Shown: piece by piece, positions 18,880 through 38,344 of the stretch
Position numbering within the stretch: the stretch's first letter is position 1
Layout: every line of letters starts with the position of its first letter
Sequence record: MK250029.1
Direction: 5' to 3' (one strand)
DNA: 64,000 nt
The notes under the pieces: generated by a model
What the model was told of the DNA's origin: nothing
Databases searched by the model: none
Seen by the model: only the letters and a program-made list of their open reading frames with translations
Made by a program: the position numbers and the translations under genes

Positions 18880-18900
18880 AATTAATAAAATATTTATGTT

Positions 18901-20908: not shown

Positions 20909-20917
20909 TAAAAAATA

Positions 20918-20977: not shown

Positions 20978-20986
20978 AATTTAGTT

Positions 20987-21439
20987 ATGAAATATAGAAA
21001 TGATTTAATAGGTAAAAAAATTTTAATTATATGTAATAGTATAGGCAACAGTTATAAAAGGTTATATTGTTCTTATGTATTAGGAAAAATAATTGAATAT
21101 AACCCAGCTACAAATAAGATTATGGTTATTAGAAATACTGGACATATTGGTTCAGCTGTTGAATTTAAAATTAATAATCATGATCCTTTTGAATATCCAT
21201 ATTATTTTGATAATCGGTTCGCAACAAGAGAACCAGAAAATGATAATGAAACATGGTGGTATGTAGCATTTGCTGATGATGAAGCTATACAATTATTAAA
21301 ACAAAATTTATTAAAACAAAATAATAGAAGACCTGTATATAAATCATACTACCTATCAACTGTTTGTTATGGTAAACATAAATCTAAAAAAGAATATTTA
21401 ACATATCTATTAAATGAATTAAACAATGAATCTAATTAA
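20987..21439 (+). CDS. Hypothetical protein inserted in the ABC module, 150 aa
   Basis: ORF track; overlaps the permease start. Confidence 0.6.
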   Translation: MKYRNDLIGKKILIICNSIGNSYKRLYCSYVLGKIIEYNPATNKIMVIRNTGHIGSAVEFKINNHDPFEYPYYFDNRFATREPENDNETWWYVAFADDEAIQLLKQNLLKQNNRRPVYKSYYLSTVCYGKHKSKKEYLTYLLNELNNESN

Positions 21440-22262
21440 ACGTCTATTTAAATTTGGTGGTGATTCTGATTTTGGAACAGTTACCAATGTAATTATTAGT
21501 ATTATTGGTGCAGTTATTATTATTATGGGATGGCATTGTATTTCAGCATATAACGTAGTACCTAGTAATATTCTTCCTGATCCTTTTAAAGTGATTGGTA
21601 GTATTCCAACATTAATTTCAGAAAATCATTTATTTGCAAATATTTGGTATACAGTAAAATTGAATTTATCATGTTATGTGTATGCTATTTTATTTTCATT
21701 TCCTATAGGATTCTTAATTGCATTGTATCCTATTAATAATATCTTATTTGGAAAATATATTAATTCAGTCCGATTTATTCCATTACCTTCTATTACAGGA
21801 ATTTTCCTTGCAATATTTGGTTTGACATTTGGAATGAAGGTATGGTTTTTGACAGTTGCAATTATGATTTATATTATTCCATCTGTTGTAAATAAAGTAA
21901 ATGATTTGCAAAACCCTGCTAATGAAAAAGATAATGTATATTTGCAAACTGCACAGACAATCGGAATGTCTTCATGGCAAAAATTCTGTTATGTATATTT
22001 CCCTTATGTAACAGGTGGTGTAGTTGATTCTTGTATTGACTTATTGGCTATTAGTTATAGTTATGTTGTTATTGCAGAAATGATTTATAAAGATGGTGCA
22101 GTAAGTGGAATGGGTGCATTGATTAATACAATGGTTAGACAATCACAAATGGCATCTGCATTTGCATTACTTTTCCTTATTATTATTATCGGTTGTGTAC
22201 AAGATTTTCTTTTTAAGAAAGGTGCAAAACTATTATTTCCTTACAAATATAAAAATGAATAA
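21426..22262 (+). CDS. ABC permease (SsuC/TauC-like), 278 aa
   Basis: ILPDPFKV, multiple TM helices, RFIPLPSI, EAA loop YLQTAQTIGMSSWQKFCYVYFP, VVIAEM...GMG. Confidence 0.9.
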   Translation: MNLIKRLFKFGGDSDFGTVTNVIISIIGAVIIIMGWHCISAYNVVPSNILPDPFKVIGSIPTLISENHLFANIWYTVKLNLSCYVYAILFSFPIGFLIALYPINNILFGKYINSVRFIPLPSITGIFLAIFGLTFGMKVWFLTVAIMIYIIPSVVNKVNDLQNPANEKDNVYLQTAQTIGMSSWQKFCYVYFPYVTGGVVDSCIDLLAISYSYVVIAEMIYKDGAVSGMGALINTMVRQSQMASAFALLFLIIIIGCVQDFLFKKGAKLLFPYKYKNE

Positions 22263-22267
22263 AAATT

Positions 22268-23212
22268 ATGAGTGATTTTAAAACATTATTCGGACAAACA
22301 AATAATAATCAAGACGAGAAAAAGAATGATATTATTTCTGAACAGAATAATACATCTGTAGATGATTCTAATATACAATCAAAGAATACAAATTCACAAG
22401 TAATTAATACTACAACTGATGGCAAATATGAATGTGAAGATGTAGATGTATTTAATTTTGTAAATATCAATAAATCATTTGGTGATTTTAAGTTATTTGA
22501 TAATCTTAATCTTACTATTAAAGACTTTAAAGATGAGGGTCAATTCATTACATTTATAGGTCAATCTGGATGTGGAAAAACTCAGCTTCTTAAGATGATC
22601 TCTGGAATCTCAAAACCAGATTCAGGTAAGATTATGTTATATGGTAAGGAAATTAAAGAATCTGATAATATACCTATGGTATTTCAGCAGTATTCAAGTT
22701 TTGAATGGATGACTGTTCTAGAAAATATCGCATTACCTATGAAACTTGCTGGCATTGATAAGAAAACACGTGAAGAAAGAGCACGTAAAATTATTAATCT
22801 TATAGGTCTAGATGGTAGTGAAAATAAGTATTGTAGATATGGTGTATTATCTGGTGGTATGTTGCAACGAGCATCAATAGGTAGAGCATTAGCATGTGAT
22901 TCGAAACTATTGATGTTAGATGAATATTCATCTGGTCTTGATTATTTTACAAAATTTGAACTTCAAGATTTGCTTCTTAAAATTTTCAATAATAGAGATG
23001 TTGACAGAACATTTCTTATGGTAACACATGATATTTCAGAGGCAGTTTACCTTTCTAATAGAATTTATATTTTGGAACCAAATCCATGTAGAATTAAGGA
23101 TATTATCGATATTAAATTCAGTCAACCACGAACACAAGCTATTCGTGAAACAGATGAATTTAAAGACTATTACGCAAAAGTTTTAAAGGCATTAAATGAA
23201 ACTGTTAAATAA
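22268..23212 (+). CDS. ABC ATPase (SsuB/TauB/NrtD-like), 314 aa
   Basis: Walker A GQSGCGKT, Q-loop VFQQ, signature LSGGM, Walker B LLMLDE, H-loop VTHD. Confidence 0.92.
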   Translation: MSDFKTLFGQTNNNQDEKKNDIISEQNNTSVDDSNIQSKNTNSQVINTTTDGKYECEDVDVFNFVNINKSFGDFKLFDNLNLTIKDFKDEGQFITFIGQSGCGKTQLLKMISGISKPDSGKIMLYGKEIKESDNIPMVFQQYSSFEWMTVLENIALPMKLAGIDKKTREERARKIINLIGLDGSENKYCRYGVLSGGMLQRASIGRALACDSKLLMLDEYSSGLDYFTKFELQDLLLKIFNNRDVDRTFLMVTHDISEAVYLSNRIYILEPNPCRIKDIIDIKFSQPRTQAIRETDEFKDYYAKVLKALNETVK

Positions 23213-23217
23213 ATTAT

Positions 23218-23529
23218 ATGGTATTTTCAGAATTAACAAATAATAATACAGTTACTATATATACAAAAAATGAGGTAAATACTTATTTTGTAAAACGAAT
23301 AGAATCTAATGATATTTCAACAAATGTCATATTAGAAGACTATAATTATATGATTACAGTTCCAAGAGATGTATCATTTTATATATTACATATAAATAAT
23401 GATATTTCTATTATCACATGTGACAATAGAATAATTGAGTTAATTAATACGGTTAAGAGATTAACAAAAAATTCTATAGGTCTTCAGCTAAATGAACTAT
23501 TTGGAAATGTATTCAAAACAAATATTTAA
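23218..23529 (+). CDS. Hypothetical protein, 103 aa
   Basis: ORF track. Confidence 0.55.
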   Translation: MVFSELTNNNTVTIYTKNEVNTYFVKRIESNDISTNVILEDYNYMITVPRDVSFYILHINNDISIITCDNRIIELINTVKRLTKNSIGLQLNELFGNVFKTNI

Positions 23530-23583
23530 TTATAAATCATGGGTATTTTTTATCCATGATTTTTTTATTTTGAATAAAATATG

Positions 23584-23591
23584 TATCTTTG
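23584..23591 (+). promoter_or_regulatory. Bacteroidota-type -7 promoter box
   Basis: TTGAATAAAATATG-TATCTTTG, just after a terminator hairpin (~23534-23567). Confidence 0.7.
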
Positions 23592-23617
23592 TATTATTAA
23601 TAAAATAATTAATTATT

Positions 23618-24142
23618 ATGAAGCAGTCTAAATTGTATACTAAGAATGAAGGAGGAAATTGTCATAGAGGTCATAATCATGGTTCTGAAAAGAAATACAG
23701 ATCTCGATATGATAGACATAAAAAGATTACAAAATTTGAAATTGATAATGAAATAACAAGGAAGAAATCTCATTATAATAAAAATAAACGAACAAATTAT
23801 GATTATGGGCCTCTATATAATTACTTACTTAAACAAGTAGGAAAGAAATGGGAAACTGTATGGAAAGATATATTTCCACGTGTTGATAATAATCCTGAAC
23901 CTATTGTATATATGGTTATAAATATAAATACACATGGAATTGTTATTACGCATGATATAAGTAATGCAGAACCTATGTTTAACTGTTCATTATACAATAA
24001 TGGTGTTCGTTCTTATTCAACATTGTATGTTGATGAAAATGATATATTACAATTTGTTGATAAAGATTTCAAACCCAATGATAGATATGAAGGTCTTGGC
24101 TTTGGACAATCTTTCAATGGAAAAGAAATTTCTACCATATAA
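23618..24142 (+). CDS. Basic hypothetical protein, 174 aa
   Basis: ORF track; YDYGPLYNYLLKQVGKKWETVW segment. Confidence 0.7.
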   Translation: MKQSKLYTKNEGGNCHRGHNHGSEKKYRSRYDRHKKITKFEIDNEITRKKSHYNKNKRTNYDYGPLYNYLLKQVGKKWETVWKDIFPRVDNNPEPIVYMVININTHGIVITHDISNAEPMFNCSLYNNGVRSYSTLYVDENDILQFVDKDFKPNDRYEGLGFGQSFNGKEISTI

Positions 24143-24166
24143 TTTTTTTATTTGGAATAAAAGGTG

Positions 24167-24174
24167 TATCTTTG
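24167..24174 (+). promoter_or_regulatory. Bacteroidota-type -7 promoter box
   Basis: GGAATAAAAGGTG-TATCTTTG. Confidence 0.65.
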
Positions 24175-24216
24175 TATTGTTAATGAAATAATAAACAATT
24201 AAAAATATAAAGAAAA

Positions 24217-24543
24217 ATGAGAGCAAATTTCACAACAGTTATCAAAAAGAGAGCAATTAAAAATGTACCAGCATTTCATGAGTTCTCTATGAGACAGATT
24301 AAGGTTATTAGTAATTCAGCTAATTATCCAAATTCTGTTACATTGTCTATGGACATTTATTGTGATAATGTTGATGGATATATTTTCAATAATGCATCTA
24401 CAAATGAGCAATATGCACTTACTGCAATTCAACTCAGTGAAGCATTACAGAAGATGATAAATAATAGAAAATGTTATAAGCCTAATAGTGAATCTGATTT
24501 GCTTAGACTTACATTTGATATTATTGAATCTTTTAAATTTTAA
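24217..24543 (+). CDS. Hypothetical protein, 108 aa
   Basis: ORF track. Confidence 0.7.
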   Translation: MRANFTTVIKKRAIKNVPAFHEFSMRQIKVISNSANYPNSVTLSMDIYCDNVDGYIFNNASTNEQYALTAIQLSEALQKMINNRKCYKPNSESDLLRLTFDIIESFKF

Positions 24544-24554
24544 TTGATTTAATG

Positions 24555-24583
24555 TAGACAATAATAAGATATTAGTATATAAT
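24555..24583 (+). promoter_or_regulatory. Sigma70-like promoter TAGACA-N17-TATAAT upstream of the tRNA
   Basis: Exact 17-nt spacing. Confidence 0.5.
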
Positions 24584-24803
24584 ATATAAATTGTTTAATG
24601 AAACAAATTAATGAATTTAAAATTAAATTTANNNNNNNNNNNNNNNNNNNNNNNNNAATTAATAATAAATAACATATAAATAATATAATAATTAAAAACA
24701 AACGCTTATTTAATTTTCGTAGCGTTATGGATAAGTTGAATGTAGAATTCAGAAATTCCTTTTAGGACGAAGATACACCACATGGCGAGGTGGTGGAATT
24801 GGT

Positions 24804-25111
24804 AAAGTGTTTGCCTGCATTAATTTGTAGAATCCATCAAATTCAGTATCAGTTAGGATTAAATTTTGAATATGAGTAGTCGCTATTGACAAAAATATTG
24901 ACAATAATTAAATTATTGTTACCTGAGGAATAAGTGTTTATTAAATAAACAACGAAGAAGCTGACTAAGAAAACCTAAGGTCTTCATAAGAAGATAGCTT
25001 GGTAATACTGAGCCAAGATAATTTTAATTATAAGGTGCAGAGACTATACGGTGGGAACTAATAGCAAGTTAAGATATAGTCCAAACTTTATAGAAATATA
25101 AAGAGTTTTTG
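24804..25111 (+). mobile_element. Group I intron in the tRNA D-loop (308 nt, no ORF)
   Basis: P1 GGUAAA/UUUGCC puts U.G at the 5' splice site; P7 GACTAT 25042-25047 pairs with ATAGTC 25076-25081; terminal G 25111. Confidence 0.85.
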
Positions 25112-25126
25112 AGACACGAGGGACTT

Positions 25127-25466
25127 AAAAAATTTGAGTGCTCTATTGAGAAATCATAGAAGTAGAATCTCCCTAACGAAACGGAAACCTAATTATTGGT
25201 GACAATAATGGTGGTGACGAACTCACTAAGTTGTTATAGAACGCGAATCTATATTAAATGTAAATTGAAGTGTTACAGCATAAATGGCGAAGAGACTATA
25301 GAGGAGATACCTAAGTTAAAGTACACAAAGAATAATCATTTTTGATTATCACTATATATGAAGAATTTATAATAAGGAATGCGCATTACTTTAATATGGT
25401 AGTAAAATAGTCCAGACTACAACATCTTAATTTTAAGGTGGCTTATGTTAAAGTAAGAGTAGTAAG
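25127..25466 (+). mobile_element. Group I intron in the anticodon, U^AA (340 nt, no ORF)
   Basis: P1 ACUUAAA/UUUGAGU with U34.G; P7 GACTAT 25294-25299 pairs with ATAGTC 25407-25412; terminal G 25466. Confidence 0.88.
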
Positions 25467-25519
25467 AAAATCCCTTGGACAGTAATGTCCGTGCCGGTTC
25501 GATCCCGGTCCTCGCTACT

Positions 25520-25556
25520 AAAGTCTGATAACTAATATAGTTATCAGACTTTTTCT
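25520..25556 (+). terminator. Intrinsic terminator after the tRNA
   Basis: AAAGTCTGATAACTA-A-TATAGTTATCAGACTTTTT. Confidence 0.8.
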
Positions 25557-25596
25557 TTTTTATAATATATATAAATTATAATTAATAATTTTAATC

Positions 25597-26733
25597 ATGA
25601 TTACAATAACAGAACAATATATAAAGGATTATAAAGATAAGTTAGATAAAATCGCAAAGTCATTCGATTTGGGTAAACAGAAAATAATCGTTGAAGAATT
25701 ATCTATTAAAGTTTCAGCACCAGATTTTTGGGATGATTTTGAAAATGCAACAACTATTACAAAGGAACTTAATACAGCAAAAGAAAAGATTAAAGATGTT
25801 TCACTTATCAATATGTTAATAGATGATCTTGAAACTGCTTTAATGTATTATAAAGAGTTTGAAGGTAAGGATGAAGAAGAACTTGTTAATCTTGCTAATG
25901 ATGAATTAATTAAAGAATTTAAAATATTTGAAAACAAATATAGATTTGTAGATCCTACTGATTCATTGGGTGCAGTATTAGATATTAATGCAGGTGCAGG
26001 TGGAACAGAAGCAAATGATTGGGCAAATATGTTATTCAGAATGTATGATATGTGGGCTAAATCAAATGGTTATAAATTTAAGATTTTATATTATTCAGAA
26101 GGTGATAAAGTAGGTATTAAAAATGTATCTATTGAAATTACCGGTAATAATGCATATGGTACATTAAAAGGTGAAACTGGTGTTCATCGTCTTGTTCGTG
26201 TTTCCCCTTATAATGCGCAGGGAAAGAGAATGACAAGTTTTGCGGCAGTTTCTGTTGTTCCGTTGGTAGATAATTCAATTAAAGTTGAAATTGATGAGTC
26301 TAAATTAACAATAGATACATTTAGATCTTCTGGTGCAGGAGGACAAAATGTTAATAAAGTTGAATCAGGTGTACGTGTAAATTATATGTATACAGATCCT
26401 GATACAGGTGAAACTGAAAAGATTCAGGTTGCAAATACAGAAACACGTGATCAACCAAAAAATAAGGAACGTGCAATGCAGATTCTTAAATCTATTCTTT
26501 ATAAAAAAGCGTTAGATAAACAACTTGCAAAGAAAAAGGAAATTGAAGATGCTAAACTAAAAAATGAATGGGGTGCACAGATTAGATCTTATGTATTTGA
26601 TGATAAGCGTGTAAAGGATCATCGTACTGGTTATCAAACAACTGATGTAGATTCTGTTATGAATGGAAATTTAAATGGATTTATAGAATCTTATAATAAT
26701 TGGATAATTGAGCAGGAAAATAATAAACTTTAA
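25597..26733 (+). CDS. prfB: Peptide chain release factor 2, 378 aa
   Basis: GAGGTEANDW, GETGVHRLVRVSPY (SPF-like specificity tripeptide), SGAGGQNVNKVES, QIRSYV; no programmed frameshift. Confidence 0.93.
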   Translation: MITITEQYIKDYKDKLDKIAKSFDLGKQKIIVEELSIKVSAPDFWDDFENATTITKELNTAKEKIKDVSLINMLIDDLETALMYYKEFEGKDEEELVNLANDELIKEFKIFENKYRFVDPTDSLGAVLDINAGAGGTEANDWANMLFRMYDMWAKSNGYKFKILYYSEGDKVGIKNVSIEITGNNAYGTLKGETGVHRLVRVSPYNAQGKRMTSFAAVSVVPLVDNSIKVEIDESKLTIDTFRSSGAGGQNVNKVESGVRVNYMYTDPDTGETEKIQVANTETRDQPKNKERAMQILKSILYKKALDKQLAKKKEIEDAKLKNEWGAQIRSYVFDDKRVKDHRTGYQTTDVDSVMNGNLNGFIESYNNWIIEQENNKL

Positions 26734-26790
26734 TATATATTCATTATATAAGTATTTAATGAATTATTTTTCTATTTAAATAAAAATGTG

Positions 26791-26798
26791 TATCTTTG
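26791..26798 (+). promoter_or_regulatory. Bacteroidota-type -7 promoter box
   Basis: TTAAATAAAAATGTG-TATCTTTG. Confidence 0.7.
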
Positions 26799-26838
26799 TA
26801 TTGTTAATAAAATAATAAACAATTAAGAATATAAAGAT

Positions 26839-27057
26839 ATGAAAATTAAGGTTGGTAGAAATAATGAGTTCGTAGAACTTGAAGAATATGATTCAATTGT
26901 AATTATTGATGATAATGGTCATGAATTTCGTATCTCTCCTACACAGAAATGTTGGGGTAAGGGTTTTGAAATTAATGATCCTGATGGAAGTTTGGTAATT
27001 CGTCCATGTGTATCTAATGAAGTAATGGTATTTTCATCTTCAGAAGTTGGTTTGTAA
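26839..27057 (+). CDS. Small hypothetical protein, 72 aa
   Basis: ORF track. Confidence 0.7.
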   Translation: MKIKVGRNNEFVELEEYDSIVIIDDNGHEFRISPTQKCWGKGFEINDPDGSLVIRPCVSNEVMVFSSSEVGL

Positions 27058-27136
27058 ATTATAACTTTCATTAATAACGCAATCACAATAATTATTATTT
27101 TACAGTTTGATTTTAAACTAAATTTAATTATTATAT

Positions 27137-27688
27137 ATGAGTTGTCATACTTGGGTTTACAAACGTATTGATTCAATGTCTCGTGAAGAGATTAATCAAG
27201 AAATTGATTGTGTTATTAATGAACGTTTATCTCGTGCATACATGAGTGAAAATGAAGAGGAATATGCAAATAAAATGGTTAAATTAACAAAAGACAGTTC
27301 AATTTCTCCATTATCATATTCAGATGCAATTAAACGATATAAAGAAGCACGATATGAAACATCACTTATTGTAAAGAAATTACAGGAAGCTAAACGTACA
27401 GGTGATTTATCTCTTATAACAGATATAAATGGATTTGATACAGCAGAAAATAATACATATCTATTTTTATGTAATGATATGCCATTTAGATGTTATGATT
27501 ATACAGATAAACAATGTTATAATAAAGATGAGCTTATTGAATTTGTACATACAGTTGAACCAAATAATATTGCAATATATGATGAAAATAATAATCAGCA
27601 TATAGGTATTCCTGTAGACATAGATGAACGAATATCTGATTTTTTTGATAAACATGGTATTAACAATTTATTAATTGAATTTGGTTGA
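27137..27688 (+). CDS. Hypothetical protein, 183 aa
   Basis: ORF track; MSCHTWVYK start. Confidence 0.75.
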   Translation: MSCHTWVYKRIDSMSREEINQEIDCVINERLSRAYMSENEEEYANKMVKLTKDSSISPLSYSDAIKRYKEARYETSLIVKKLQEAKRTGDLSLITDINGFDTAENNTYLFLCNDMPFRCYDYTDKQCYNKDELIEFVHTVEPNNIAIYDENNNQHIGIPVDIDERISDFFDKHGINNLLIEFG

Positions 27689-27689
27689 T

Positions 27690-28142
27690 ATGAGAACAAA
27701 TATAGATTTACATCCTATTGCTATAGGATATACAAATTGTGATATTGAACTTGATTCATTTTCATTACTTTGTTGTCTTGATGAAATAGGGTTTACATAT
27801 CCAAAAACAGACAAATATTTAAATGTAGGTGCATGTAGGAATTTAAGAGAATTTAATGAGATACATGATAAAATATATTATTATATGATTTATGATTTTC
27901 TATGTTCTACATATGGTATTTCTGTAACATTTTTTGAGGGTGAATCTATTTCATATAATGAACGAGGTGTAATAGAAAAAGTTGAAGTTGATGGAATGGA
28001 TAAAGAATCTGATATATACAAGATTATATCAAATATGGTATTTGATAATATTAATATTGCATATAAGACTGTTGCACATATGATCGTATCAGATTTAAAT
28101 TGGAGACATATTCAAAAGAAAAATTTTTCTAAGATAAAATAA
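27690..28142 (+). CDS. Hypothetical protein, ~150 aa
   Basis: ATG 27690 directly follows the previous stop. Confidence 0.65.
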   Translation: MRTNIDLHPIAIGYTNCDIELDSFSLLCCLDEIGFTYPKTDKYLNVGACRNLREFNEIHDKIYYYMIYDFLCSTYGISVTFFEGESISYNERGVIEKVEVDGMDKESDIYKIISNMVFDNINIAYKTVAHMIVSDLNWRHIQKKNFSKIK

Positions 28143-28212
28143 GACTTTATTATTAAACACATATATAAAGAATAATTAATTTAACATATTAACTTTTAAA
28201 TTTAGATTTAGC

Positions 28213-28776
28213 ATGGGATTATTTGAACTTTTTAATAAGAAAAATGCTGCAGATGTAAGTACATTGTTTACTGATGAAAATAAAGTTTCTATTTCAGCAG
28301 CAGATGCATATAAGAAGTCTCGCTATGGTATCTTGAAATCTGATAAGATGATGCTTGAAGAATTCTTTACAGATGTAAAACTTATGGTAGAGCAGAAGAA
28401 TATGGAGCGTAGTTATTGTGGTATGCTTCAGCTTGATGATGACATTATTAAGTTTCTTCCTCGTATTAAGGATCGGTTGATGCGTCAACTTGGATTTAAA
28501 GTAATCATTCTTGATGATAATTCTGTTATTACAAATAAAGAATTGAAGTCAGAAGATACAATTAAAACAGGTAGTACATTTGTTTTGCTTGTATGGAATA
28601 AACAGGCAATTGAGGAAGTTGAAGAAATGAAAGCAAACAATTTGTTGGAACCTATTTCAGATGACTCATCAATTGCAACAGAAACAGTAGATTCTATTAA
28701 GGATGAAAAGAAAGAGGAAATAACTCCTGCTATTTCTGGAAATTCTAATCCTATGAAGAAACATCTTAATAGTTAA
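28213..28776 (+). CDS. Hypothetical protein, 187 aa
   Basis: ORF track; AAGACT-N17-TATAAA at 28141-28169. Confidence 0.75.
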   Translation: MGLFELFNKKNAADVSTLFTDENKVSISAADAYKKSRYGILKSDKMMLEEFFTDVKLMVEQKNMERSYCGMLQLDDDIIKFLPRIKDRLMRQLGFKVIILDDNSVITNKELKSEDTIKTGSTFVLLVWNKQAIEEVEEMKANNLLEPISDDSSIATETVDSIKDEKKEEITPAISGNSNPMKKHLNS

Positions 28777-28794
28777 AAAAAAATTGTTAAAATA

Positions 28795-28823
28795 TAGACT
28801 TTTTAAATATTAAGACATATAAT
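28795..28823 (+). promoter_or_regulatory. Sigma70-like promoter TAGACT-N17-TATAAT
   Basis: Exact spacing; no ORF before the terminator at 29241. Confidence 0.5.
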
Positions 28824-28829
28824 ATATAA

Positions 28830-29280
28830 AATAAATATAGTGATACTAAATTTAAATATGTTTGATAAGTTATATATTTAAGTCATTGGAAGAATTTAAA
28901 TTATAACATACATATAAAAATTTGATTAAATTATATTTATAAAAAAGATAAGATTTAGATAATTATTTTTCTATATATTTAATATATAGTTTTCTTAGGT
29001 TAACTTCACATATATTATATGTTATTAAGTTAAATATCTAAATAATAAGAATAGAGAAAATGGTGATTATATGATTATACATAAGATGTTTTTTAATTAT
29101 CCTTAGTTTTTAAATGTATAATCATTTCCGTTTAAATGTTTTGGTTTTGGATAATTAACAATCATTTAAACAAATTAAAAAGAAGGGAGTGTTTATCACT
29201 TAGATAAACACAAAAGAAGAAAAGGAAAGATAGATGATAAGAGTGAAAGTCGTTGTGATAACGGTTTTCACTCATTTTTT
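28830..29280 (+). ncRNA. Candidate structured ncRNA of unknown class
   Basis: ORF-free unit between a promoter and a terminator; stems 29071-82/29114-25, 29130-38/29163-71 and 29189-97/29203-11; 10-bp loop-loop complementarity. Confidence 0.4.
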
Positions 29281-29281
29281 T
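29241..29281 (+). terminator. Intrinsic terminator
   Basis: GAGTGAAAGTCGTT-GTGAT-AACGGTTTTCACTC plus T-run. Confidence 0.75.
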
Positions 29282-29316
29282 ATTATTTAATATTTTTATA
29301 TTTAAATAAAAATGTG

Positions 29317-29324
29317 TATCTTTG
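29317..29324 (+). promoter_or_regulatory. Bacteroidota-type -7 promoter box
   Basis: TTAAATAAAAATGTG-TATCTTTG, same context as 26791. Confidence 0.7.
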
Positions 29325-29363
29325 TAATATACTATAATAGTAATTATTAAAATTAATTTATAT

Positions 29364-30953
29364 ATGAAATATTTGTTGAATTGGATCGAAAAAGAATTAA
29401 ATCCAGAACGGCATGTGAGTTCAAAAACAACATCATCTGAATATTATTATTTTTATGGTGCAAAAGTTCGATTTGCTGATCATATTTCAGATAGAAATGA
29501 TAGTGATTTGGAAATTATATTAGTAAAGGATTTAACTGGTCAAAATAAACATTATCTGATAAAGGAGCAGAATTATCCTGTAATGGTATCTGTTCCTGAC
29601 GTAAAAACTTTAAAAATTGTATTATCTACATTTATATTCCAATTTAAGAATAGATATTCAGATAATATAGTAAAAGAAGCAAATAAGTCAGAGGAGAATA
29701 AAAAAATATTAAATACATGTTTAAATCAGCTACGTTCAAATAATAATGCTAATTTAGATATATTTCAAACATTTGATAAATGCATTTATAGTATTATTCC
29801 TCAATGGCATAATATGAAACAAATATATAGAATTATATTCATGCATTTATTTAAATTATGTGGTGATATTGACAAGATTAAGGATATTATTGATATTGAA
29901 TTTCCGAATGATAATCAAAATGATTGGCATCATAAGAATACTAATGATATTATTAATATATTAGTAACATATTTTCCAGATGATTATAATATCAGAAATA
30001 TTATTGGATTAGACGAAACTATTAGTCCTAAAGAAAAATTTGCTAATTGTTTTAATGAATACTATAAGAATCTTGATGTTAATATAGAAGATATGAAGGA
30101 AGAAGATAAATCTAAATTCTTAAATGCATTTGGAAGTCTTCTTGCATTAGATACAAAAAATAAATATGCTAAATGTTCAGATCATCAAAAGAAGTATATC
30201 CGTTCATTACTTAATGAACATATATCATATGATAATATTTTGAAATTTGTGAATAGTATATTTGATGTTTTATTTACACCAAAGATGAAACATAAAAATG
30301 ATGCACCACAAATAAAAATTATTGTTGATAAATTCTTACGGATGTATAATATTGGAATTATTAAATTTCCAAATGAATATGACTTTGATTCTACTTATAA
30401 CAATAATTTTAATCATATTGATGTAATACAGGAAGAATCTACTGATATTGAAAAAACTACTGATGATACTACTATTAATGAAAATATAGAAGTAACGGAA
30501 AATAAGGAACCATGTAATGATATTCAATATGAAACTATAACAGATTATATTCCTGATACTGATATTACTATTAAAGATTCATATAATTATGCATCTACAG
30601 AATTTGATGATATTCAAGATATTCATGAAATGTTTGAACAGAATCAAATTAATATACTTAATGATGTAATTAAGAAAATTAATGATACCAATAAGTATAC
30701 ATCATTTGAAACTAGACGTATTACTGATATATTTGCTTCACATTATTCAGATATATGGGAGAAACTTACATGGACACAAAAAGAACTTTGTTCATCTATT
30801 ATAACAAATGAACGAATGAATTTGAGTGAAACTGATTATATTATCAATAAAATATTTGATAAAACATCGTTTAATTTCCCTGTAACGGAACTTTGTCGTA
30901 AATATATAAAAGAATATAGTCAACGTATAAAGGAGAGCCGTATGGCTGCTTAA
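29364..30953 (+). CDS. Multidomain hypothetical protein with an acidic linker, 529 aa
   Basis: ORF track; no TAG. Confidence 0.75.
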   Translation: MKYLLNWIEKELNPERHVSSKTTSSEYYYFYGAKVRFADHISDRNDSDLEIILVKDLTGQNKHYLIKEQNYPVMVSVPDVKTLKIVLSTFIFQFKNRYSDNIVKEANKSEENKKILNTCLNQLRSNNNANLDIFQTFDKCIYSIIPQWHNMKQIYRIIFMHLFKLCGDIDKIKDIIDIEFPNDNQNDWHHKNTNDIINILVTYFPDDYNIRNIIGLDETISPKEKFANCFNEYYKNLDVNIEDMKEEDKSKFLNAFGSLLALDTKNKYAKCSDHQKKYIRSLLNEHISYDNILKFVNSIFDVLFTPKMKHKNDAPQIKIIVDKFLRMYNIGIIKFPNEYDFDSTYNNNFNHIDVIQEESTDIEKTTDDTTINENIEVTENKEPCNDIQYETITDYIPDTDITIKDSYNYASTEFDDIQDIHEMFEQNQINILNDVIKKINDTNKYTSFETRRITDIFASHYSDIWEKLTWTQKELCSSIITNERMNLSETDYIINKIFDKTSFNFPVTELCRKYIKEYSQRIKESRMAA

Positions 30954-30957: not shown

Positions 30958-31006
30958 AGAAATAGGATAGATATACTAATACAGTTATCTATCCTATTTT
31001 ATTTTT
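30958..31006. terminator. Bidirectional terminator
   Basis: AAATAGGATAGATA...TATCTATCCTATTT between convergent genes. Confidence 0.75.
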
Positions 31007-34000
31007 TATATTGCATAACCAGAATTTCCAGTTGATTTATTATCAGAATTTGCATTTTGTTTTGCTTGCCATGCTCTATCCATTGCAGCTTTATCAACAT
31101 CCTAAAATTTATGTATATCATCAACTATATATGTATTTCGTTTAGGTTGTTTTATTGATTGCATCTTCATATGTTTATGAGGCGGAATATGAGGCTTATT
31201 ATCCTATAACTTCATATTTTTCTATCTACTTCGTAATTCATCATATGTTGATTCTATAATATCTGCAAGAGATAACATATCTTCTGTACTTATATTATCT
31301 AATTCATTAACATCTATTGACGTTAATGCTTTTAATTTTTCTGTAAGTTTTTTATCATCTGTAATATTTACTAATTTCATTTCTGGTTTATAATCATTAT
31401 TATCAGTAATATTATCAAATAACATTGCAGAAGGAATATCATCTGTAATAACAGGTTTATTCATTACCATTTCTGATTTTTCATTAACAGATGTATTAGA
31501 AATAAATGGAATATTTGCAGTTGAACTATTATTAATATTCTATGTCATTTGCATATCAATAATACTTTCATTCTTTAATGGCTTACTCATTACCATCTTT
31601 GTTTTATATTCATTTGCATTTAATTCTGTCATACTCATACCAGGATTATTATCAACAAATTCTGTATGTGTCATCTGCATATTAGGTATAGACGAATCCA
31701 TATTTAATCTTGTCATATCCATATTAGATAATGAAGAATTTGATATTACTTCTGTCATTTTCATACTCGGATTTTCAGTAATCTAATCGATATTAGTCAT
31801 TTTCATATCAGATGTAGAAACATTCATATCAAGATGAATCATATCCATATTTGCAATAGATATATCATTATTAGGAGTTGTTAATATCATATCAGGTAAT
31901 GATGTATCAGTTATAGGGTAAATAAAATCCATATCAGAAGTAGAAGTATTCATATCAAGATGTGTCATATCCATATTTGCTATAGATGAATCTTGTATTA
32001 ACTGTAACATCTAACCATTAACAGTAGAATTATTAGATATAAGCTTAGTCATATCCATATTTGCTATAGATACATTCTAATTTAATATTGTCATATCCAT
32101 ATTTGGATTTGTCTATTGAGAATTTAACATAACCATATCAGTAGGATTTGTCTAATCTGTAATTTCTACATTATGCATTAATATAGATGGTTTAAATGTT
32201 TCATTTTCTGTTGGAATTAAACCTGGTTTTGGTTTTGAAAGATACATATCCATTGTTGTCATTTGATTATGTGCCTAAGGTCTTGCATCACCTTCTAATG
32301 GTTGTAAATTATGATGTTCTTTACTAATAGTCTATGGATTATTTACTAATACCATTGATGAATTACTTACATCCTATAATACTGGTATAAATGTCATAGA
32401 ATTATGGTCTGAATTTATATTATTAGTAACTAAATTCATTGATGCATTACTTGTATCTATATATGTTGAATCATTACTCATATTCATATCGTTATGATCC
32501 GTATTTAATTCAGGCTTTATATACTCCATTGAATTATGTTCTGTATTAATCTATGTTTCTACAAATGCCATTGAATTATGTTCTGTATTCATAACAGGTG
32601 AAATATAATTCATATCATTATGATCTAAATTCATTTCTGGTTCTACATAATTCTAATAAGACTTACTAAGATTAAATTCTGGTTCCACATAATTATGATG
32701 TTCTTTCTGTAGATTCATTTCTGGTTCTACATAATTCTAATCAGCTTTATCAAGATTAAATTCTGGTTCCACATAACTATGATGATTTTTATGTAAATTC
32801 ATTTCTGGAGAAACATAATTCATATCATTATGAACTAAATTCATTTCTGGAGAAACATAATTCTAATCAGATTTATCAAGATTAAATTCTGGTTCTACAT
32901 AATTATGTTTATTTTTGTCTAAATTCATTTCAGGTGAAACATAATTCTAATCAGCTTTATCTAAATTCATATATGGTTTAATATAATCCATAATACTATG
33001 GTCTAAATTAAACTCAGGCTCAACATATGTTTGATGTGGTTTATTAAGATTAAACTCTGGTTTAATATAATTCTATTTAAATTTATCGAGATTAAATTCT
33101 GGTTTCACATAATTCATATCATTATGATCTAAATTCATTTCTGGTGAAATATAATTCATATCATTATGTTCTAAATTAAATTCTGGAGTTATATAATCAT
33201 ATTCTGGTTTATCTAGATTTTCATCAAGCTCAGTATAATTCTATGATATTTTATCTAAGTTTTCATTCAGATGAATATAATTATGTTCAGGTTTTTCAAG
33301 ATTTTTCTAAATAGAAGGATCAATTAATCTAAAACTTGCATCACTTCCAATAATCTGAATTTTTGGTTCTAACTTAGTTACAGATGTATCTATAATACCT
33401 GGATCTATTATATTATAATATGCATTACTTCCTACAACATAAGTATTTCTTAACATATGTAATAACATTACCTTTATACGATTTTTCATCTATTGCTAAG
33501 CTTTAACAACATCTGGACCGTATAAAAGTTGCTCATGATCATATATATAAGACCATTCATATGGTCTCTATAAATCATTATAGAACTAATCTCTGTCAGG
33601 ATTTCTAGAATCACGAACTAATACAGGTCTTGAATGAATAACTTTTTTAAGATATTTTTTCAAATCCTTCCATGAACTTATAGTATAAAGATTATCTCTT
33701 ACATTTGCTTCATGCCAACTATTATCTGGTAATTGTGGACCATATACATCTGCAGTTCCATATAATTTGTCATAATCTGCATTATCACCAACTTTATGTG
33801 TAATTTCTTTATCAAAATACGCAGTATATTCAGATGGCATCATAAACATACGTCTCATCCACCTTGTTCTGAAATTCGCATGATTATCTGCGTTAGTTGA
33901 TGTATAGTCATTTCTTTCTGATATAGACTAAAAATCAGAAATCCAGTTAACTGTATTTTTTACATTCGCATTCTATTTACTATCAGTCTAATTAGGATCT

Positions 34001-35040
34001 AATGCATCTATCTTTTTCATTAAGCCGTTAGAATAGAATGTTTTTACATTTTTTACAGAAATTGTTATTTTTGTTTCGGCATCCTTATGTTCATCATATG
34101 CAGTAGCATATTCATTATCCCATATTGATTCAATATCAATTTCACATGGACCGCATTCTAACGCATATATAGGAAAATCGTTTTGCTCTACACTATATAC
34201 AGCAGTTGCATTTCCTGTTGATTTATCCCATTTATAACCAGTCTATAAAATACGTCTATCAAATACATAGATAATCATTTTGAAATATCTATATATATCT
34301 GGTAATATCCATCTTTGCCAAACATCATCATATGCAGCTTTTCTATACATTTCCAATAATGTACGAATTTTCAAATCAATCCCTTCATAACATTCTAATG
34401 TAATCTTCGCATCCTTAAGTCGTACTCCTTTTCCCGGTTCAAATGATGTCAACTTTTCTAATCCAGTAATTTTTTTGAACAGATAAGGCATACTTCTCTA
34501 TATTTCATAAAGGCCTTGAACAAAGGTTTTAATATAAGATGCGCGCGCATCTTCATTTCTGTTCATCAGATAATTATATGTATTATAATGTTCCTAATTA
34601 CTCCAATTTTCCGTATTATCAAATTCTAAAAAATTTAAATCAAGTAAACCCATTGGAAATTGATCATAATCTTCATAATATATGTTATTATAAAGACTTG
34701 TTTTCTATTGGTTCTTTATTGTTTCTGTATCAAGAACTGAACACCCCCAATCACCAAATTCAACTTTAAACATAAGTCGAGTAGGATCTTCAAAACCTGA
34801 TCTGAATACTTCAGAAGGCATATCAGCACCATATTCATTTCCCATATGAAATCGTTCCATGATTTCATTCTGTTCCATAAATCGTCCAGATGATAAAATC
34901 CACGATTCACTGTCAGTTACTTTCTACTCTAATTCATTTGTTTTAGTATCTCCAGTAAGTAATGAATTAAATCCTTTTAAAAAATTGTATGCAGAATTTG
35001 TCTTTTTATTTAAGCCTTTTAATGTACTAAAAATACCCAT
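31006..35040 (-). CDS. Large putative tail/baseplate structural protein with 14-aa tandem repeats, 1344 aa
   Basis: Track ORFs 34243, 33586, 33307, 31783, 31540 and 31222 are all one frame joined by TAG; the globular N-terminal part (FEDPTRL...CYEGIDLKIRTLLEMYRKAAYD) looks tail-tube-like, by eye only. Confidence 0.6.
32480..33300 (-). repeat. Coding tandem repeats, 42 bp/14 aa: (Q/H/M)NY(V/I)(E/S/K)PE(F/M)NLxxxx
   Basis: Recurrent aaattcatttctgg / agattaaattctgg...acataatt units with 42-bp period. Confidence 0.85.
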
Positions 35041-35056
35041 AATTTAATTAATCATT

Positions 35057-36607
35057 TTATTTTACTGGTGTAATGAATGGTGTTTTATTAGGATTATTCG
35101 GTGTATCTACCAATATCAATTTACTTTCATTCCGTGTTACTGGTGAATACATATCTAATTTATAATTATCTCCTATTTCATATTCATTTTCATATAATCT
35201 GATATTACACATCTATATATTACATCCCATATCTTCTATACTAAATTCATGTACAGAAAAATCAGATATATTCCAAGCAATATTTGTATCTGTTTTAACA
35301 ACATCTCCTATTACGCGATCACCAACTTCCTTCGGTGTACTTATTAATATTCTAGTATTATCAGGTGATATATCTAACATAATATAAGACCATATATCAA
35401 ATTCAAAATTAATAGGTATATGTTTAGATTTATTACCTACCTATATCTATAATTCATTCTATCTTATAAGAACGTCAAATGTTATTTTACTATTTTCATC
35501 ATAACCTCTGATTAATTTATAAATATTAGTTTTATAAATTTTCAAAAATTGTGAATTTTCATACCATTTTGTTAATTTCTTATTTGCTTTTGCCATATCA
35601 GAATTTTTAATGGCAATACCCAATGATTCAACACATTCATCAAGTTCAACAACAACTGCATTAACTTTTATTAATGTTCCTCTTGTTATTGTTACATTAT
35701 CTCCTAATTCTAATTTTATTGAAGTGGAAACTCTAAAATACCAATTATCAGAATCTTTAGAATAATATACCAATTTTATTACTTTACTATCTTGAATATA
35801 ACTATTGAGAAAACACCAGCATGAATATATAAGATGATTTCTTGATGATGATATTTCATATAATAATTCATCATTATATGTAATATTTTTTGATGCAATA
35901 GAAAAATCATAATACGCATTTGATATAAGATTTCCATTTGAACCAAATATCTAATTTGATACTATAGAATCTATGTCATAATCCTTCTGAGGATCTACAT
36001 AAGTTGTATTATTATATGATGTTTCTACTGGTGCATCTACATCTGCTACTTCTTCTGATATAGTATCTCCAAATAATTCTTCTTGTGATGTTGTAAGTTC
36101 TTCTACAGAATCTCTAAATTCCTATGTTTCTTTTCTAGATGCAGTTGGACTATATTTTGATAAAATAACTTTATAATATGTAGGTAATGCAGCTATTGTA
36201 TAAATTAATTCAGAAGACTACACTTCAAATAATTTATGATAAATCTATACATATACAATATCTCCTTTCTATGGCATAGTATTATTTCCAAACATATTTT
36301 GCCATTCCTATATAGTTATATTAATTTCAAGTGGCTAAACATAATTAAGACCATATAAATCAATAGTATATTCACCTGGATTATAGTCTGGGTTTGAAAC
36401 AATAACTTTAACAATTTTAGGGCATTCGAGACCTACCTATGTTAATGTATATTCCTATAAAACAACATCTTCAGAATTGATGACAGGTGTTGCACGCGCC
36501 CATAAGCAGTCTGTTCCAACAGTCTCTGTCGCAGACTGTTGGATTTCTTTTATTGTTTCATACGCGGATTTTATAATTTCATTAATATCAATTCCTAAAC
36601 CTGTCAT
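35057..36607 (-). CDS. T4 gp14-like neck protein with a C-terminal extension, 516 aa
   Basis: IDLYGLNYVQPLEINITIQEWQNMFGNNTMPQKGDIVYVQIYHKLFEVQSSE resembles gp14 FGMQVQDEVTLSI...PKEGDLIYF...LFEINWVE. Confidence 0.7.
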
Positions 36608-36609
36608 AA

Positions 36610-38319
36610 TTAATTATTTAATGTTTCATTTATTTTTTGTTCCATTGAAGATAATTCATTACATAATTCTTTAATATTACGTATACGTATCTTTATTTGA
36701 TTACTATCTTCCTGACATTTTTTTAATTTCTATTCTTTCGCCCATGTTGACATATATGTGTCTTCCTTATTATTCGCATATGTATCTTTAAATGATGATA
36801 TAGCAATCTATATATTACCATATTGTTGTAACATATTATTTAACAATTTACTATATACACCATATAACATCATAAGTGATTTAAATTTTATAACGTCATT
36901 CCTATATATATTTTTAATTTCATTACATAATACTTTACCTGTTTGTGTAAATGCCTATAACTATGGTAATATTTCCTTTAATTCTTTATTAAAATTAGAA
37001 ATGCCTATTTTTGATCTATTCTATGCAATTAATTTTTTATATCTCAAAATATTAGCTCTTGCTATTTTATTGCAATAATCATCTGTTCCATATAATTTCT
37101 CATAATCATATGATTCTAATTTTCTACCAAACGCAAAGAGTTCTGATGATTTTCCACCAGCATATGGATGATATTTTCCTAAAATATCTTTAGTCCATTT
37201 ATATATCTTTCGTTGCTATTCTTCAAAATCTAATTTTCTCTGATGTGTTTTTTCTGTATCCAATTTAAACTCATTGTATCCTTTTAAATTAGAATCATCC
37301 ATTTTTCGTTTACCATTATCTTTAGTCGATATAACATTTCCATCATAATCTTTATGTCCACTTTCTGGTATATAAACAATGAAATAATCATCATTTGAAT
37401 TTCCCCAACCTGTAAATTTATTTAACTTACTTGATTTTGAATATGGATTCGCACCGACTTTCTATAATTTCTTTTTAATGCCATTATATGTACTTATATA
37501 TTTTGATAAATCTAAAAAATTCTTCACAAAACCTATTCCACATAATTCTCGTTTATCACCACCACGAGATAAACGAGCAACAGTAGGATATGTTAATACA
37601 GTTCCGTCTTTTAATGCCTATGTTAAATTATTAACAATAAGATTATCTTTCCTGCATGCGTCTTCAATAATTTCCGGTGTTAATTTATGTGTTTGAAAAC
37701 TTTGCCAAACACGTCCATCTTCAAATGTTATATTTTCATTATCTATAGCAAATAATACCATTCTACCATATACAGAAACAACAAGAATTTTACCTTCTGA
37801 ATTAAACCAAAATATTGCATATTCATTAATGTATTGTTTTAGATCCTTATTTTTCTTTAAATCCGATACGGTATACTTTTTAAAGTTTTCATCTGTTAAA
37901 TTAAATAAATCCAATTTATTCATAGGGAAAGTTCCATCAGCATTACTTAATATTACAGAAGATAATACCTATGGATCTGGTTTAATAAACAATTTTGATG
38001 TATAATCTTTGTATAATTCTAATGTTTGCATATATTTGTTATGTAATGCTTTCTTCTATTCATCTGTTTTTATAGATTCATGTTGATAACTATACGAATC
38101 ATATGCTTCAGTTGAATATACAGGAAATGTATTAGAAATAATATCATTTAATATTTCAAATTGATCTAATGCTTTTTTATACATTGTTCCAGGATATGGT
38201 TGTTTATAATATGTAAACATCTTTCCTTTATCATTAAGAATATCATGAATAACTGTGTCTGACTATAAACGTTCAGTTAAATATTTTTCAGTAATATATT
38301 TTTTTAAACTAAATTGCAT
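36610..38319 (-). CDS. Hypothetical protein with LTE N-terminus, possibly head-internal, 569 aa
   Basis: MQFSLKKYITEKYLTERL; continuous code-15 frame that includes track ORF 37618. Confidence 0.7.
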
Positions 38320-38344
38320 AATGATAGATTTATTCTATTTTTAT

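Follow-up and report, generated by a model that had tools for sequence, protein, structure and literature searches.

Does the ORF-free interval between a 187-aa gene and a 529-aa gene of the giant gut phage Lak-C1, which infects Prevotella, encode a structured RNA, and if so, where does that RNA begin and end? The window analysed here is a stretch of 64,000 nucleotides of this phage (sequence record MK250029.1), in which TAG is recoded to Gln. The original prediction, made from the sequence alone, placed in this interval an ORF-free transcription unit of ~450 nt, with its own promoter, three stems, two perfectly complementary hairpin loops and a strong terminator, followed by a gene with its own promoter, and inferred a novel structured non-coding RNA. 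All of these sequence features were found where they had been placed, and the observation is thus confirmed. The inference of a novel structured RNA is likewise supported, although the unit of ~450 nt proved to be composite and the conserved RNA is shorter (~240 nt in Lak-C1, ~180–250 nt in relatives).

Lak megaphages are among the largest phages of the human and animal gut; they have never been cultured, and most of their genes are without an assignment. Lak intergenic regions are reported to be among the most highly expressed parts of the A1 and A2 genomes, albeit without coordinates (bioRxiv 10.1101/356790). The present analysis defines one such region as a discrete, putative RNA gene backed by covariation. 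Labels such as L037 denote the Lak-like contigs and loci that were compared with Lak-C1.

Layout of the locus

The positions of all features are collected in Table 1. The gap 28777–29363 holds no ORF of 40 aa or more on either strand, under genetic code table 11 or with TAG read as Gln; code 4 (TGA as Trp) opens nothing useful. No tRNA or tmRNA was found in the gap. Short ORFs of 4–23 aa do exist, but they differ in frame, length and sequence between clades: those starting at the ATG of the 5' motif vary from 4 to 16 aa, this ATG is lost in Lak-B4/B1, and the ATG of an 18-aa ORF is ATT in L037. No conserved reading frame is therefore present, and a tiny peptide gene is very unlikely.

Table 1. 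Features of the putative RNA locus and its neighbours (positions within the 64,000-nt window)
Feature	Position	Strand	Remarks
Upstream 187-aa gene	28213–28776	+	Stop codon at 28774–28776
Predicted promoter	28795–28823	+	TAGACT (-35-like) 28795–28800; 17-nt spacer; TATAAT (-10) 28818–28823
Insertion of ~218 nt	28823–29040	+	Edges +/- 3 nt because of microhomology; copy of a dispersed repeat
Conserved body of the non-coding RNA	29041–29281	+	~240 nt
Single-stranded 5' motif	29057–29067	+	AAAAUGGUGAU
Hairpin P1 with loop L1	29071–29125	+	29071–29082 with 29114–29125 (12 bp); 31-nt loop
L1 kissing segment	29093–29102	+	UUAAUUAUCC; exact reverse complement (10 nt) of 29149–29158
Hairpin P2 with loop L2	29130–29171	+	29130–29138 with 29163–29171 (9 bp); 24-nt loop
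L2 kissing segment	29149–29158	+	GGAUAAUUAA
Hairpin P3	29189–29211	+	29189–29197 with 29203–29211 (9 bp); variable and dispensable
Purine-rich single-stranded motif	29219–29235	+	GAAAAGGAAAGAUAGAU
Intrinsic terminator	29241–29281	+	29241–29255 with 29259–29273 (15 bp, G+C-containing); run of 7 U 29275–29281
-7 box (TAtcTTTG) of the next gene's promoter	29317–29324	+	Bacteroidota-type motif; not part of the RNA
Downstream 529-aa gene	29364–30953	+

The promoter consensus alone is not above chance in this AT-rich DNA (14 sigma-70-like sites against 17 expected, and 3 TAGAC-N17/18-TATAA sites in the window against 1.25 expected), nor is it of the Bacteroidota TTTG/TAnnTTTG type. Its support comes instead from conservation across clades: TAGAC(A/T)-N16-17-TATAA(A/T) is kept at the equivalent place in most of the loci examined while neighbouring bases vary, with single-base variants in L037 (TAGGCT) and L057 (TAAACT), and none was found in L062, where only ~40 nt follow the gene. 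The same promoter type precedes another ORF-free RNA unit in the window, the intron-containing tRNA at 24555, as well as a copy of the inserted repeat in L016. These observations speak against the alternative that the element is merely the structured 3' untranslated region and terminator of the operon ending with the 187-aa gene, stabilising that mRNA or being released from it as a processed small RNA. Nevertheless, no terminator lies between the stop codon of that gene and the RNA, the RNA always follows the same gene, and the hexamers are not individually above chance; this alternative is thus unlikely but remains possible. Part of 28213–29400 is present in three RNA sequencing runs (38% of its sampled words), but these words cannot be assigned to any part of it.

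Conservation and genomic context

Comparison with 15 further distinct sequences from about five Lak clades showed one copy per genome of a putative RNA gene of ~180–250 nt, conserved across all Lak-like phages examined and lying directly after the 187-aa gene. In every contig that extends far enough, an ORF-free gap of 275–430 nt follows this gene (homologs down to 46% identity), whichever gene comes next. The body is as conserved between clades as the coding DNA (75% for C1 against Lak-B) and has sharp edges. A covariance model built for the RNA found exactly one copy each in Lak-C1, A1 (where the corresponding region is around positions ~371,250–371,540 of MK250015.1) and B7, BLAST likewise revealed no second copy in three complete Lak genomes, and distant clades were hit at 70 bits (E 1e-11) and 53 bits (E 5e-8); in a search of the window the match extends to 29280. 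The signature motif GGAAAGATAGAT-N11-14-GTCGTTGTGA occurs in 6 Lak-like IMG/VR contigs and in 0 of 185,579 bacterial and archaeal species genomes. A metagenome scan returned only two near-identical loci, and a protein search seeded with the most distant homolog of the 187-aa protein found nothing new.

In contrast to the upstream gene, the downstream gene is not linked to the RNA: it encodes the 529-aa protein, ClpP or a 515-aa protein with PolB-type Pfam hits, and a separate promoter-like sequence lies between the terminator and that gene in each case. In Lak-C1 this sequence belongs to a repeated promoter-like family of ~50 nt, with copies at 18848, 23546, 24129, 26753, 29279 and 54651 (direct-repeat families D6, D9 and D10), and its -7 box fits the TAnnTTTG consensus of Bacteroides promoters. 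A cis-acting leader (riboswitch or attenuator) might be suspected from an aptamer-like fold followed by a terminator upstream of a gene on the same strand, but this reading is largely refuted by the changing downstream gene; furthermore, no alternative anti-terminator pairing was seen and no Rfam riboswitch matched.

No Rfam 15 family was matched. The whole window gave 0 hits at gathering thresholds, while 28700–29400 searched at E <= 10 gave only four sub-threshold chance hits, of which the best was NrrF (18.8 bits against a threshold of 60). A ToxI-like RNA of a type III toxin-antitoxin system, with tandem direct repeats of ~36 nt next to an endoribonuclease gene, is not supported either, as no direct-repeat family lies within 28777–29281 and the flanking proteins have no family hits. 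For the 187-aa protein, Pfam, PHROGs and Atlas searches gave no lead, and the AlphaFold model was unusable (pLDDT 47.8); nothing links this protein to RNA binding.

Secondary structure and loop-loop pairing

The minimum free energy of 29040–29285 is -51.5 kcal/mol, against -36.8 +/- 4.1 for 200 dinucleotide shuffles (z = -3.6; 0 of 200 shuffles fold as well). RNAalifold on 10 sequences gave 12 of 49 pairs as compensatory. In the model-fitted alignment of 16 sequences, 26 of 49 pairs changed on both sides (15.7 +/- 1.6 in shuffles, with 0 of 500 shuffles reaching this, and 2–7 in slid controls), and 99.3% of cells are paired against 83.7% in shuffles. It must be noted that an alignment fitted to the model favours the structure and that only about five independent clades exist, so that many cells share inherited changes. 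With this limit, the helices and the loop-loop pairing withstand the covariation and shuffled-control tests that had been named in advance as capable of refuting them.

In P1, 4 of 9 modelled pairs changed on both sides and 100% of cells are paired, whereas 6 of 9 pairs changed in P2 and 9 of 9 in P3. In the L052 group only one hairpin follows P1; although the model placed it at P3, its loop carries the complement to L1, and P3 is therefore read as the missing one. The terminator stem is kept by compensatory changes in all clades (7 of 15 pairs changed on both sides, in the lower stem), while its upper part, GUCGUUGUGA(U)AACGG, is invariant except in L050/L051. Outside the helices, the GGUG core of the 5' motif is invariant among the 15 aligned sequences; AAUGGUGA is also present in L050/L051, but lies after P2 there. 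Within the purine-rich motif, GGAAAGAUAGAU is identical in the 15 aligned sequences, and L050/L051 have GAAAGAUGGUA instead.

The complement between L1 and L2 is kept (7–10 nt, perfect) in five different sequence versions across the clades, with the sequences UUAAUUAUCC, UAAUUAACC, AUUACCCA, UUACCCA and CACAUUAUCA. Loop shuffles give p of 0–0.003 for each version; the 10-nt complement of Lak-C1 arises in 0.1–0.3% of them. The duplex energy is -8.7 kcal/mol for the Lak-C1 pair, and -7 to -11 kcal/mol overall.

The kissing loop is established as base pairing, but covariation cannot separate pairing within one molecule from pairing between molecules. P1 and P2 are adjacent (4–6-nt linker) and of similar length in each clade (12/9–13, 13/11, 11/12, 12/10 and 12/12 bp), which fits side-by-side packing within one molecule. 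Alternatively, L1 of one copy could pair with L2 of the next, giving dimers, closed rings or cages as in phi29 packaging RNA or the ROOL/GOLLD homo-oligomers, in which case the function would be scaffolding or encapsulation rather than regulation. The long loops and the long complement are consistent with this view, the Lak-B L2 segment is also self-complementary (GUUAAUUAAC), and in ROOL a conserved kissing loop first read as tertiary proved to be quaternary (PMC12286853). Since the adjacent, length-matched hairpins and the absence of any match to the pRNA, ROOL or GOLLD models speak against it, the intermolecular reading is considered unlikely.

Both strands fold well (z = -3.6 and -5.7), as expected for DNA palindromes. 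However, a DNA-level element (replication origin, packaging site or protein-binding palindromes) is very unlikely: the G.U pairs conserved in the helices (in 15 of 16 and 13 of 16 sequences in the terminator) would be A-C mismatches on the other strand or in a cruciform, and the loop-loop covariation has no DNA rationale. Together with a U-run present only on the + strand, these pairs assign the RNA to that strand.

The insertion in Lak-C1

The originally proposed length of ~450 nt includes ~218 nt inserted between the -10 box and the RNA body. The nested stems predicted at ~28990–29060 are real, but they lie in this insertion, which is specific to the C1 lineage, and not in the conserved RNA. 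The insertion is absent from Lak-A1/A2, Lak-B and the 97–98%-identical relatives L035/L036/L037 and L059, and arose within the recent divergence of the C1 lineage, while contig L061 has a longer copy at the same site. For Lak-C1, a composite transcript of ~450 nt or a processed one is predicted.

The inserted sequence belongs to a dispersed repeat with at least 9 related copies in Lak-C1, 8 in A1 and 7 in B7, and more distant copies are the 3' ends of 393–449-aa ORFs of a multi-copy, possibly TnpB-like, gene family. As with the guide (omega/re) RNAs of TnpB/IscB, the repeat overlaps the 3' end of the ORF and continues into hairpins with a sharp 3' edge, and solo copies without the ORF are dispersed in the genome. 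The hairpins of the repeat were seen by eye only and are not established, as RNAalifold on 11 copies gave almost no consensus (-0.3 kcal/mol). The protein gave no Pfam TnpB domain and nothing in PDB, only a sub-threshold IS605-OrfB N-terminal hit (TIGR01765, E 0.01), with RuvC-like motifs seen by eye. The repeat can thus only be called possibly guide-RNA-like.

Proposed function and comparison with other RNAs

The locus is best explained (with a probability of roughly 0.6) as a single-copy gene for a structured non-coding RNA restricted to Lak-like Prevotella megaphages, read from its own predicted promoter and ending at the intrinsic terminator. In this view, the kissing interaction would lock P1 and P2 side by side into a compact core, displaying the 5' AAAAUGGUGA stretch, the GGAAAGAUAGAU stretch and the apex of the terminator as recognition surfaces for a partner, and the RNA would then act in trans as a regulator or ribonucleoprotein scaffold. 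It would act in the early, standard-code phase of infection, because it closes the conserved early block that begins with the phage release factor 2, and the product of the adjacent 187-aa gene is the first candidate partner. Conservation, single copy number, secondary structure, loop-loop pairing, lack of coding capacity, strand and the insertion rest on the analyses described above, whereas transcription itself, promoter use, action in trans, the partner and the timing are inferred.

No phage target was found beyond chance. In Lak genomes, the complement of GGAAAGAUAGAU occurs only with mismatches and at control level, and the second exact sense copy lies inside a coding frame. The complement of AAAAUGGUGAU appeared enriched (4–6 hits against 0–1 in the control), but all sites lie where the + strand has only short open frames; these were rejected as targets and are read, without inspection of the minus-strand frames, as the antisense of minus-strand genes encoding Asn-Gly-Asp with the preferred codons.

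Of related systems, the phi29-family packaging RNA (pRNA, Rfam RF00044) is, like the putative Lak RNA with its predicted promoter, a small phage-encoded RNA (~120–174 nt) made from its own promoter, with two mutually complementary loops whose complementarity is kept by covariation between related phages. However, there is no covariance-model match even at E <= 10, the pRNA loop pairing is 4 bp and intermolecular (7–10 bp here), and pRNA closes its 5' and 3' ends into a helix, whereas the Lak RNA ends in an intrinsic terminator; moreover, Lak phages are ~540-kb phages unrelated to phi29. The ornate ROOL, GOLLD and OLE RNAs of phages and bacteria are structured RNAs of unknown function, often phage-borne, held together by covarying kissing loops (PMC12286853). 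ROOL and GOLLD are often encoded near translation-related genes (tRNA islands), and in Lak-C1 release factor 2 and the intron-containing tRNA lie 2.5–4.5 kb upstream. Those RNAs are, however, 580–800+ nt long with many pseudoknots, compared with ~240 nt and three simple hairpins here, and no Rfam match was obtained.

The P2/P3 hairpins of purine riboswitches are also neighbours of matched length whose apical loops pair, but those contacts are a few base pairs within a ligand-binding three-way junction upstream of a regulated gene, while the Lak RNA has a complement of 7–10 bp and neither a three-way junction nor a constant downstream gene. The trans-acting small RNAs of Bacteroidota (for example, GibS and MasB) and stable phage RNAs such as T4 RNA C/D share with it an own promoter (predicted here), an intrinsic terminator, conserved single-stranded stretches that could serve as seeds and the lack of an ORF; nevertheless, no sequence or model similarity was detected, no phage target was found and the promoter is not of the Bacteroidota -7/-33 type.

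A more speculative and unlikely possibility is that the RNA is a self-assembling unit, closed by pairing between copies into a ring or cage and working in the early translation take-over module of the phage (release factor 2, the intron-containing tRNA and the 187-aa protein), for example by sequestering a host translation or termination factor while TAG is switched from stop to glutamine. The fixed place of the RNA at the end of the early block makes a role in host take-over or in the recoding switch directly testable. Furthermore, the RNA is short enough for in vitro transcription, chemical probing and cryo-EM, and the five natural versions of the loop-loop helix already serve as compensatory mutants.

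Other sequences in the window

Two pairs of equal-length ORFs (529 aa at 19319 and 29364; 378 aa at 15708 and 25597) suggested a 10-kb duplication against which the locus could be compared, but the members of each pair proved to be unrelated. The window also contains a run of N at 24633–24657.

Genomic context and genetic code

The 2.7 kb around the locus is 100% identical to Prevotella phage Lak-C1 (MK250029.1, 540 kb), 97.7% identical to Lak-A1/A2 and 74-76% identical to the baboon Lak-B genomes, with a G+C content of about 25%. Long reading frames open over much of the window only if TAG is read as glutamine, the code reported for Lak phages (PMC6784885). However, this recoding is patchy, as a block of ~16 kb uses the standard code with no in-frame TAG, while the neighbouring blocks (1-15000 and 31000-50700) have up to 32 in-frame TAG per gene. 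Further, among the 69-nt repeats near the start of the window, one copy has TAG where the sister copies have CAA. The standard-code, presumably early, block includes a release factor 2 gene (PCRF and RF-1 domains), and the locus lies near its end.

Features of the locus

The observation made in the original prediction holds, since the promoter, the three stems, the exactly complementary loop segments and the terminator are all present at the places it listed. The 587-nt gap contains no ORF of 40 aa or more under table 11 or with TAG=Q. The body folds to -51.5 kcal/mol, 3.6 standard deviations below dinucleotide shuffles, and a 10-nt complement between the two loops arises in about 0.1-0.3% of loop shuffles. 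The promoter match alone is not remarkable in DNA this AT-rich. No Rfam family matched, either at gathering thresholds over the whole window or at E <= 10 over the gap, and ARAGORN found nothing there.

Coordinates of the features of the locus and of related elements (window positions unless another sequence is named)
Feature	Position	Strand	Remarks
In-frame tandem repeats, 69-nt period	335-927		about 8 units
Standard-code block	15029-30953		no in-frame TAG
Promoter-like family of ~50 nt	18848, 23546, 24129, 26753, 29279, 54651	+	each just upstream of a gene
Second ORF-free unit	24555-25560	+	TAGAC-N17-TATAA promoter at 24555
Run of N	24633-24657
Terminator of the second ORF-free unit	~25521-25560
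Release factor 2 gene	25597-26733		PCRF and RF-1 domains
Predicted promoter of the RNA	28795-28823		TAGACT-17-TATAAT
Insertion	28823-29040		about 218 nt
Part of the gap conserved in other Lak genomes	29022-29300
Stem P1	29071-29082/29114-29125
Loop segment L1	29093-29102		exact complement of the L2 segment
Stem P2	29130-29138/29163-29171
Loop segment L2	29149-29158		exact complement of the L1 segment
Stem P3	29189-29197/29203-29211
Terminator stem	29241-29273		15 bp, followed by seven T
ORF of 1344 aa	31006-35040	-
In-frame tandem repeats, 42-nt period	32461-33303		about 20 units, inside the 1344-aa ORF
Segments 76-83% identical	60096-60476 and 61240-61590	-	spaced ~1.12 kb apart
Related repeat copy, L018	L018:1552-1726	+
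Related repeat copy, L021	L021:1552-1723	+	MK250029.1 ~384230-384550
Related repeat copy, L024	L024:1504-1672	-	MK250029.1 ~173560-173843
Related repeat copy, L030	L030:1452-1649	-
Promoter-type site, L050	L050:2422-2450		distant clade

Comparative anatomy

Apart from the promoter, which the alignment shows to be conserved as well, only one part of the gap is conserved in other Lak genomes, at 96.5% in Lak-A and about 75% in Lak-B, the same level as the flanking coding DNA. In this alignment, Lak-C1 alone carries about 218 extra bases between the -10 box and the conserved body. Relatives 97-98% identical to C1 (contigs L035/L036/L037 and L059) lack this insertion, while one other contig (L061) has a longer, diverged copy of the same element at the same point.

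To reach further, searches were carried out with the upstream 187-aa protein, which has homologs down to 46% identity, and the corresponding contigs were retrieved. In every contig that extends far enough, the gene is followed by an ORF-free gap of 275-430 nt, whereas the next gene varies: the 529-aa unknown, ClpP, or a 515-aa protein with PolB-type Pfam hits. These gaps share the predicted promoter TAGAC(A/T)-N16-17-TATAA(A/T) (with single-base variants in L037 and contig L057), an AAUGGUG motif, two hairpins with complementary loops, a purine-rich GGAAAGAUAGAU stretch and a terminator whose upper part is almost invariant. The third hairpin is missing in one clade (the L052 group), and in the most distant clade (L050/L051) the AAUGGUGA motif lies after the hairpins.

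Secondary structure and covariation

RNAalifold on ten sequences recovers P1, P2, P3 and the terminator, with 12 of 49 pairs compensatory, although it also includes a long-range A-run/U-run helix that is regarded as spurious. A covariance model built from that alignment finds exactly one copy in each of three complete Lak genomes, and detects the L052 group at about 70 bits (E 1e-11) and L051 at 53 bits (E 5e-8). On the 16-sequence model alignment, 99.3% of cells are standard pairs against 83.7% after shuffling partners, and 26 of 49 pairs show changes on both sides against 15.7 +/- 1.6 in shuffles (0 of 500 shuffles), while sliding the partners by 1-3 columns leaves 2-7 such pairs. Since this alignment is fitted to the model and the sequences fall into only about five clades, these numbers overstate independence; nevertheless, the signal is clear in every helix. 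Conserved G.U pairs in the terminator and elsewhere, as well as the U-run, fit only the + strand.

The loop-loop helix

As the covariance model cannot represent the kissing helix, P1 and P2 were located in every sequence and the longest perfect complement between their loops was sought. It is present everywhere, with different sequences.

Complementary segments in the loops of P1 (L1) and P2 (L2), by clade
Clade	L1	L2	Length
C1/A	UUAAUUAUCC	GGAUAAUUAA	10
Lak-B	UAAUUAACC	GGUUAAUUA	9
L053	UAAUUAUCC	GGAUAAUUA	9
L052	AUUACCCA	UGGGUAAU	8
L054 group	UUACCCA	UGGGUAA	7
L050/L051	CACAUUAUCA	UGAUAAUGUG	10

Anchored on the shared AUUA core, one position shows U:A, A:U and C:G, and four further positions are doubly changed in L050/L051. 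Duplex energies are -7 to -11 kcal/mol. The loop-loop pairing, which is unusually long, is therefore established as well as covariation can establish it, although sequence alone does not separate pairing within one RNA from pairing between RNAs. The case of ROOL, where a conserved “tertiary” kissing loop proved to be quaternary, is a direct warning in this regard (PMC12286853). The matched lengths of P1 and P2 in each clade, along with their 4-6-nt linker, lean toward a side-by-side intramolecular arrangement.

Coding, cis-regulatory and DNA-level alternatives

The locus is read as non-coding, as the short ORFs in the body differ in frame, length and sequence between clades; the ATG of the 18-aa frame before the terminator is ATT in L037, and the ATG in the AAUGGUG motif is AAG in Lak-B4/B1. 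A cis-regulatory role is opposed by the downstream gene, which changes between clades and has its own promoter-like site. In C1/A/B, this site is a member of a repeated family of ~50-nt promoter-like sequences sharing ...AAAATATGTATCTTTGTA..., i.e. a Bacteroidota-type TAnnTTTG -7 box, a different class from the TAGAC/TATAA promoters that precede the RNA genes. In other clades, it is a TAAAC-N17-TATAAT site. In the distant clades (L050, and L050/L052/L054 after the terminator), the TAGAC/TAAAC-N17-TATAA(A/T) type also precedes protein genes (the 187-aa homolog, ClpP), and is therefore a general promoter class of these phages rather than one restricted to RNA genes. The G.U pairs and the loop-loop covariation argue against a DNA element.

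Distribution and inferred function

The 22-base signature GGAAAGATAGAT-N11-14-GTCGTTGTGA occurs in six Lak-like IMG/VR contigs and in none of 185,579 bacterial and archaeal species genomes. The RNA is therefore phage-specific and has no host counterpart at this level of similarity. No target was found in Lak genomes; complements of the two conserved single-stranded motifs occur there at control level or, on the present reading, as the antisense of coding DNA. The neighbouring 187-aa protein gave no family, feature or fold lead.

The interpretation of the locus as a novel structured non-coding RNA is supported: it is a conserved RNA gene with covariation support, found only in Lak megaphages and without a match in Rfam or in the papers searched. 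While the conservation, fold, loop-loop complementarity and absence of a conserved reading frame rest on the comparative evidence, independent transcription and any function are inferred. In the account favoured here, the RNA would be independently transcribed and terminator-ended, and its kissing-loop core would present invariant single-stranded segments and an invariant hairpin apex to a partner. It would act in trans during the early phase, as part of the conserved block that starts with release factor 2. The main rival, self-assembly through intermolecular kissing, differs only in the molecularity of a pairing that is itself well supported.

The insertion and its repeat family

The 218 nt peculiar to Lak-C1 belong to a dispersed family of ~170-330-nt repeats, with at least 9 copies in C1, 8 in A1 and 7 in B7. 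Several C1 copies are absent from A1, and since the copy sets differ, the element has moved recently. The more distant copies are the last ~55 codons and the 3' flank of 393-449-aa ORFs read with TAG=Q, whereas the closer copies, including this one, are solo elements that have lost the frame but keep a sharp common 3' edge. Some are followed by a short spacer and a terminator, one by a tRNA array, and one (L021) is flanked on both sides by a ~22-nt direct repeat beginning TAATATAAGTAG. In L024, the last ~21 nt of the element plus a ~47-nt spacer are tandemly duplicated, and the copy in L016 is preceded by the same TAGACT-N17-TATAAT promoter. By eye, the ORFs carry RuvC-like motifs, and a sub-threshold hit to the N-terminal domain of IS605 OrfB was obtained (E 0.01), but there is no Pfam or PDB match, and RNAalifold on 11 copies is nearly blank. 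A TnpB-like nuclease with a 3'-overlapping guide RNA, and solo guide-like remnants, is thus a lead and not a result. Consequently, the “nested stems” at 28990-29060 and the ~450-nt length proposed in the original prediction are properties of this insertion, and not of the conserved RNA.

Other features of the window

A second ORF-free unit carries the same TAGAC-N17-TATAA promoter and a terminator, and lies directly upstream of release factor 2. ARAGORN with introns allowed predicts here a long-variable-arm (type II) tRNA split by a ~640-nt intron, with the anticodon and splice sites unresolved, and the intron contains a group-I-like core (RF00028, 41.8 bits against a gathering score of 50, E 6e-9). 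The long in-frame tandem repeats of 42-nt and 69-nt period indicate repetitive protein domains. Towards the end of the window, a 112-aa ORF repeats part of the adjacent 644-aa gene, suggesting partial gene duplication.
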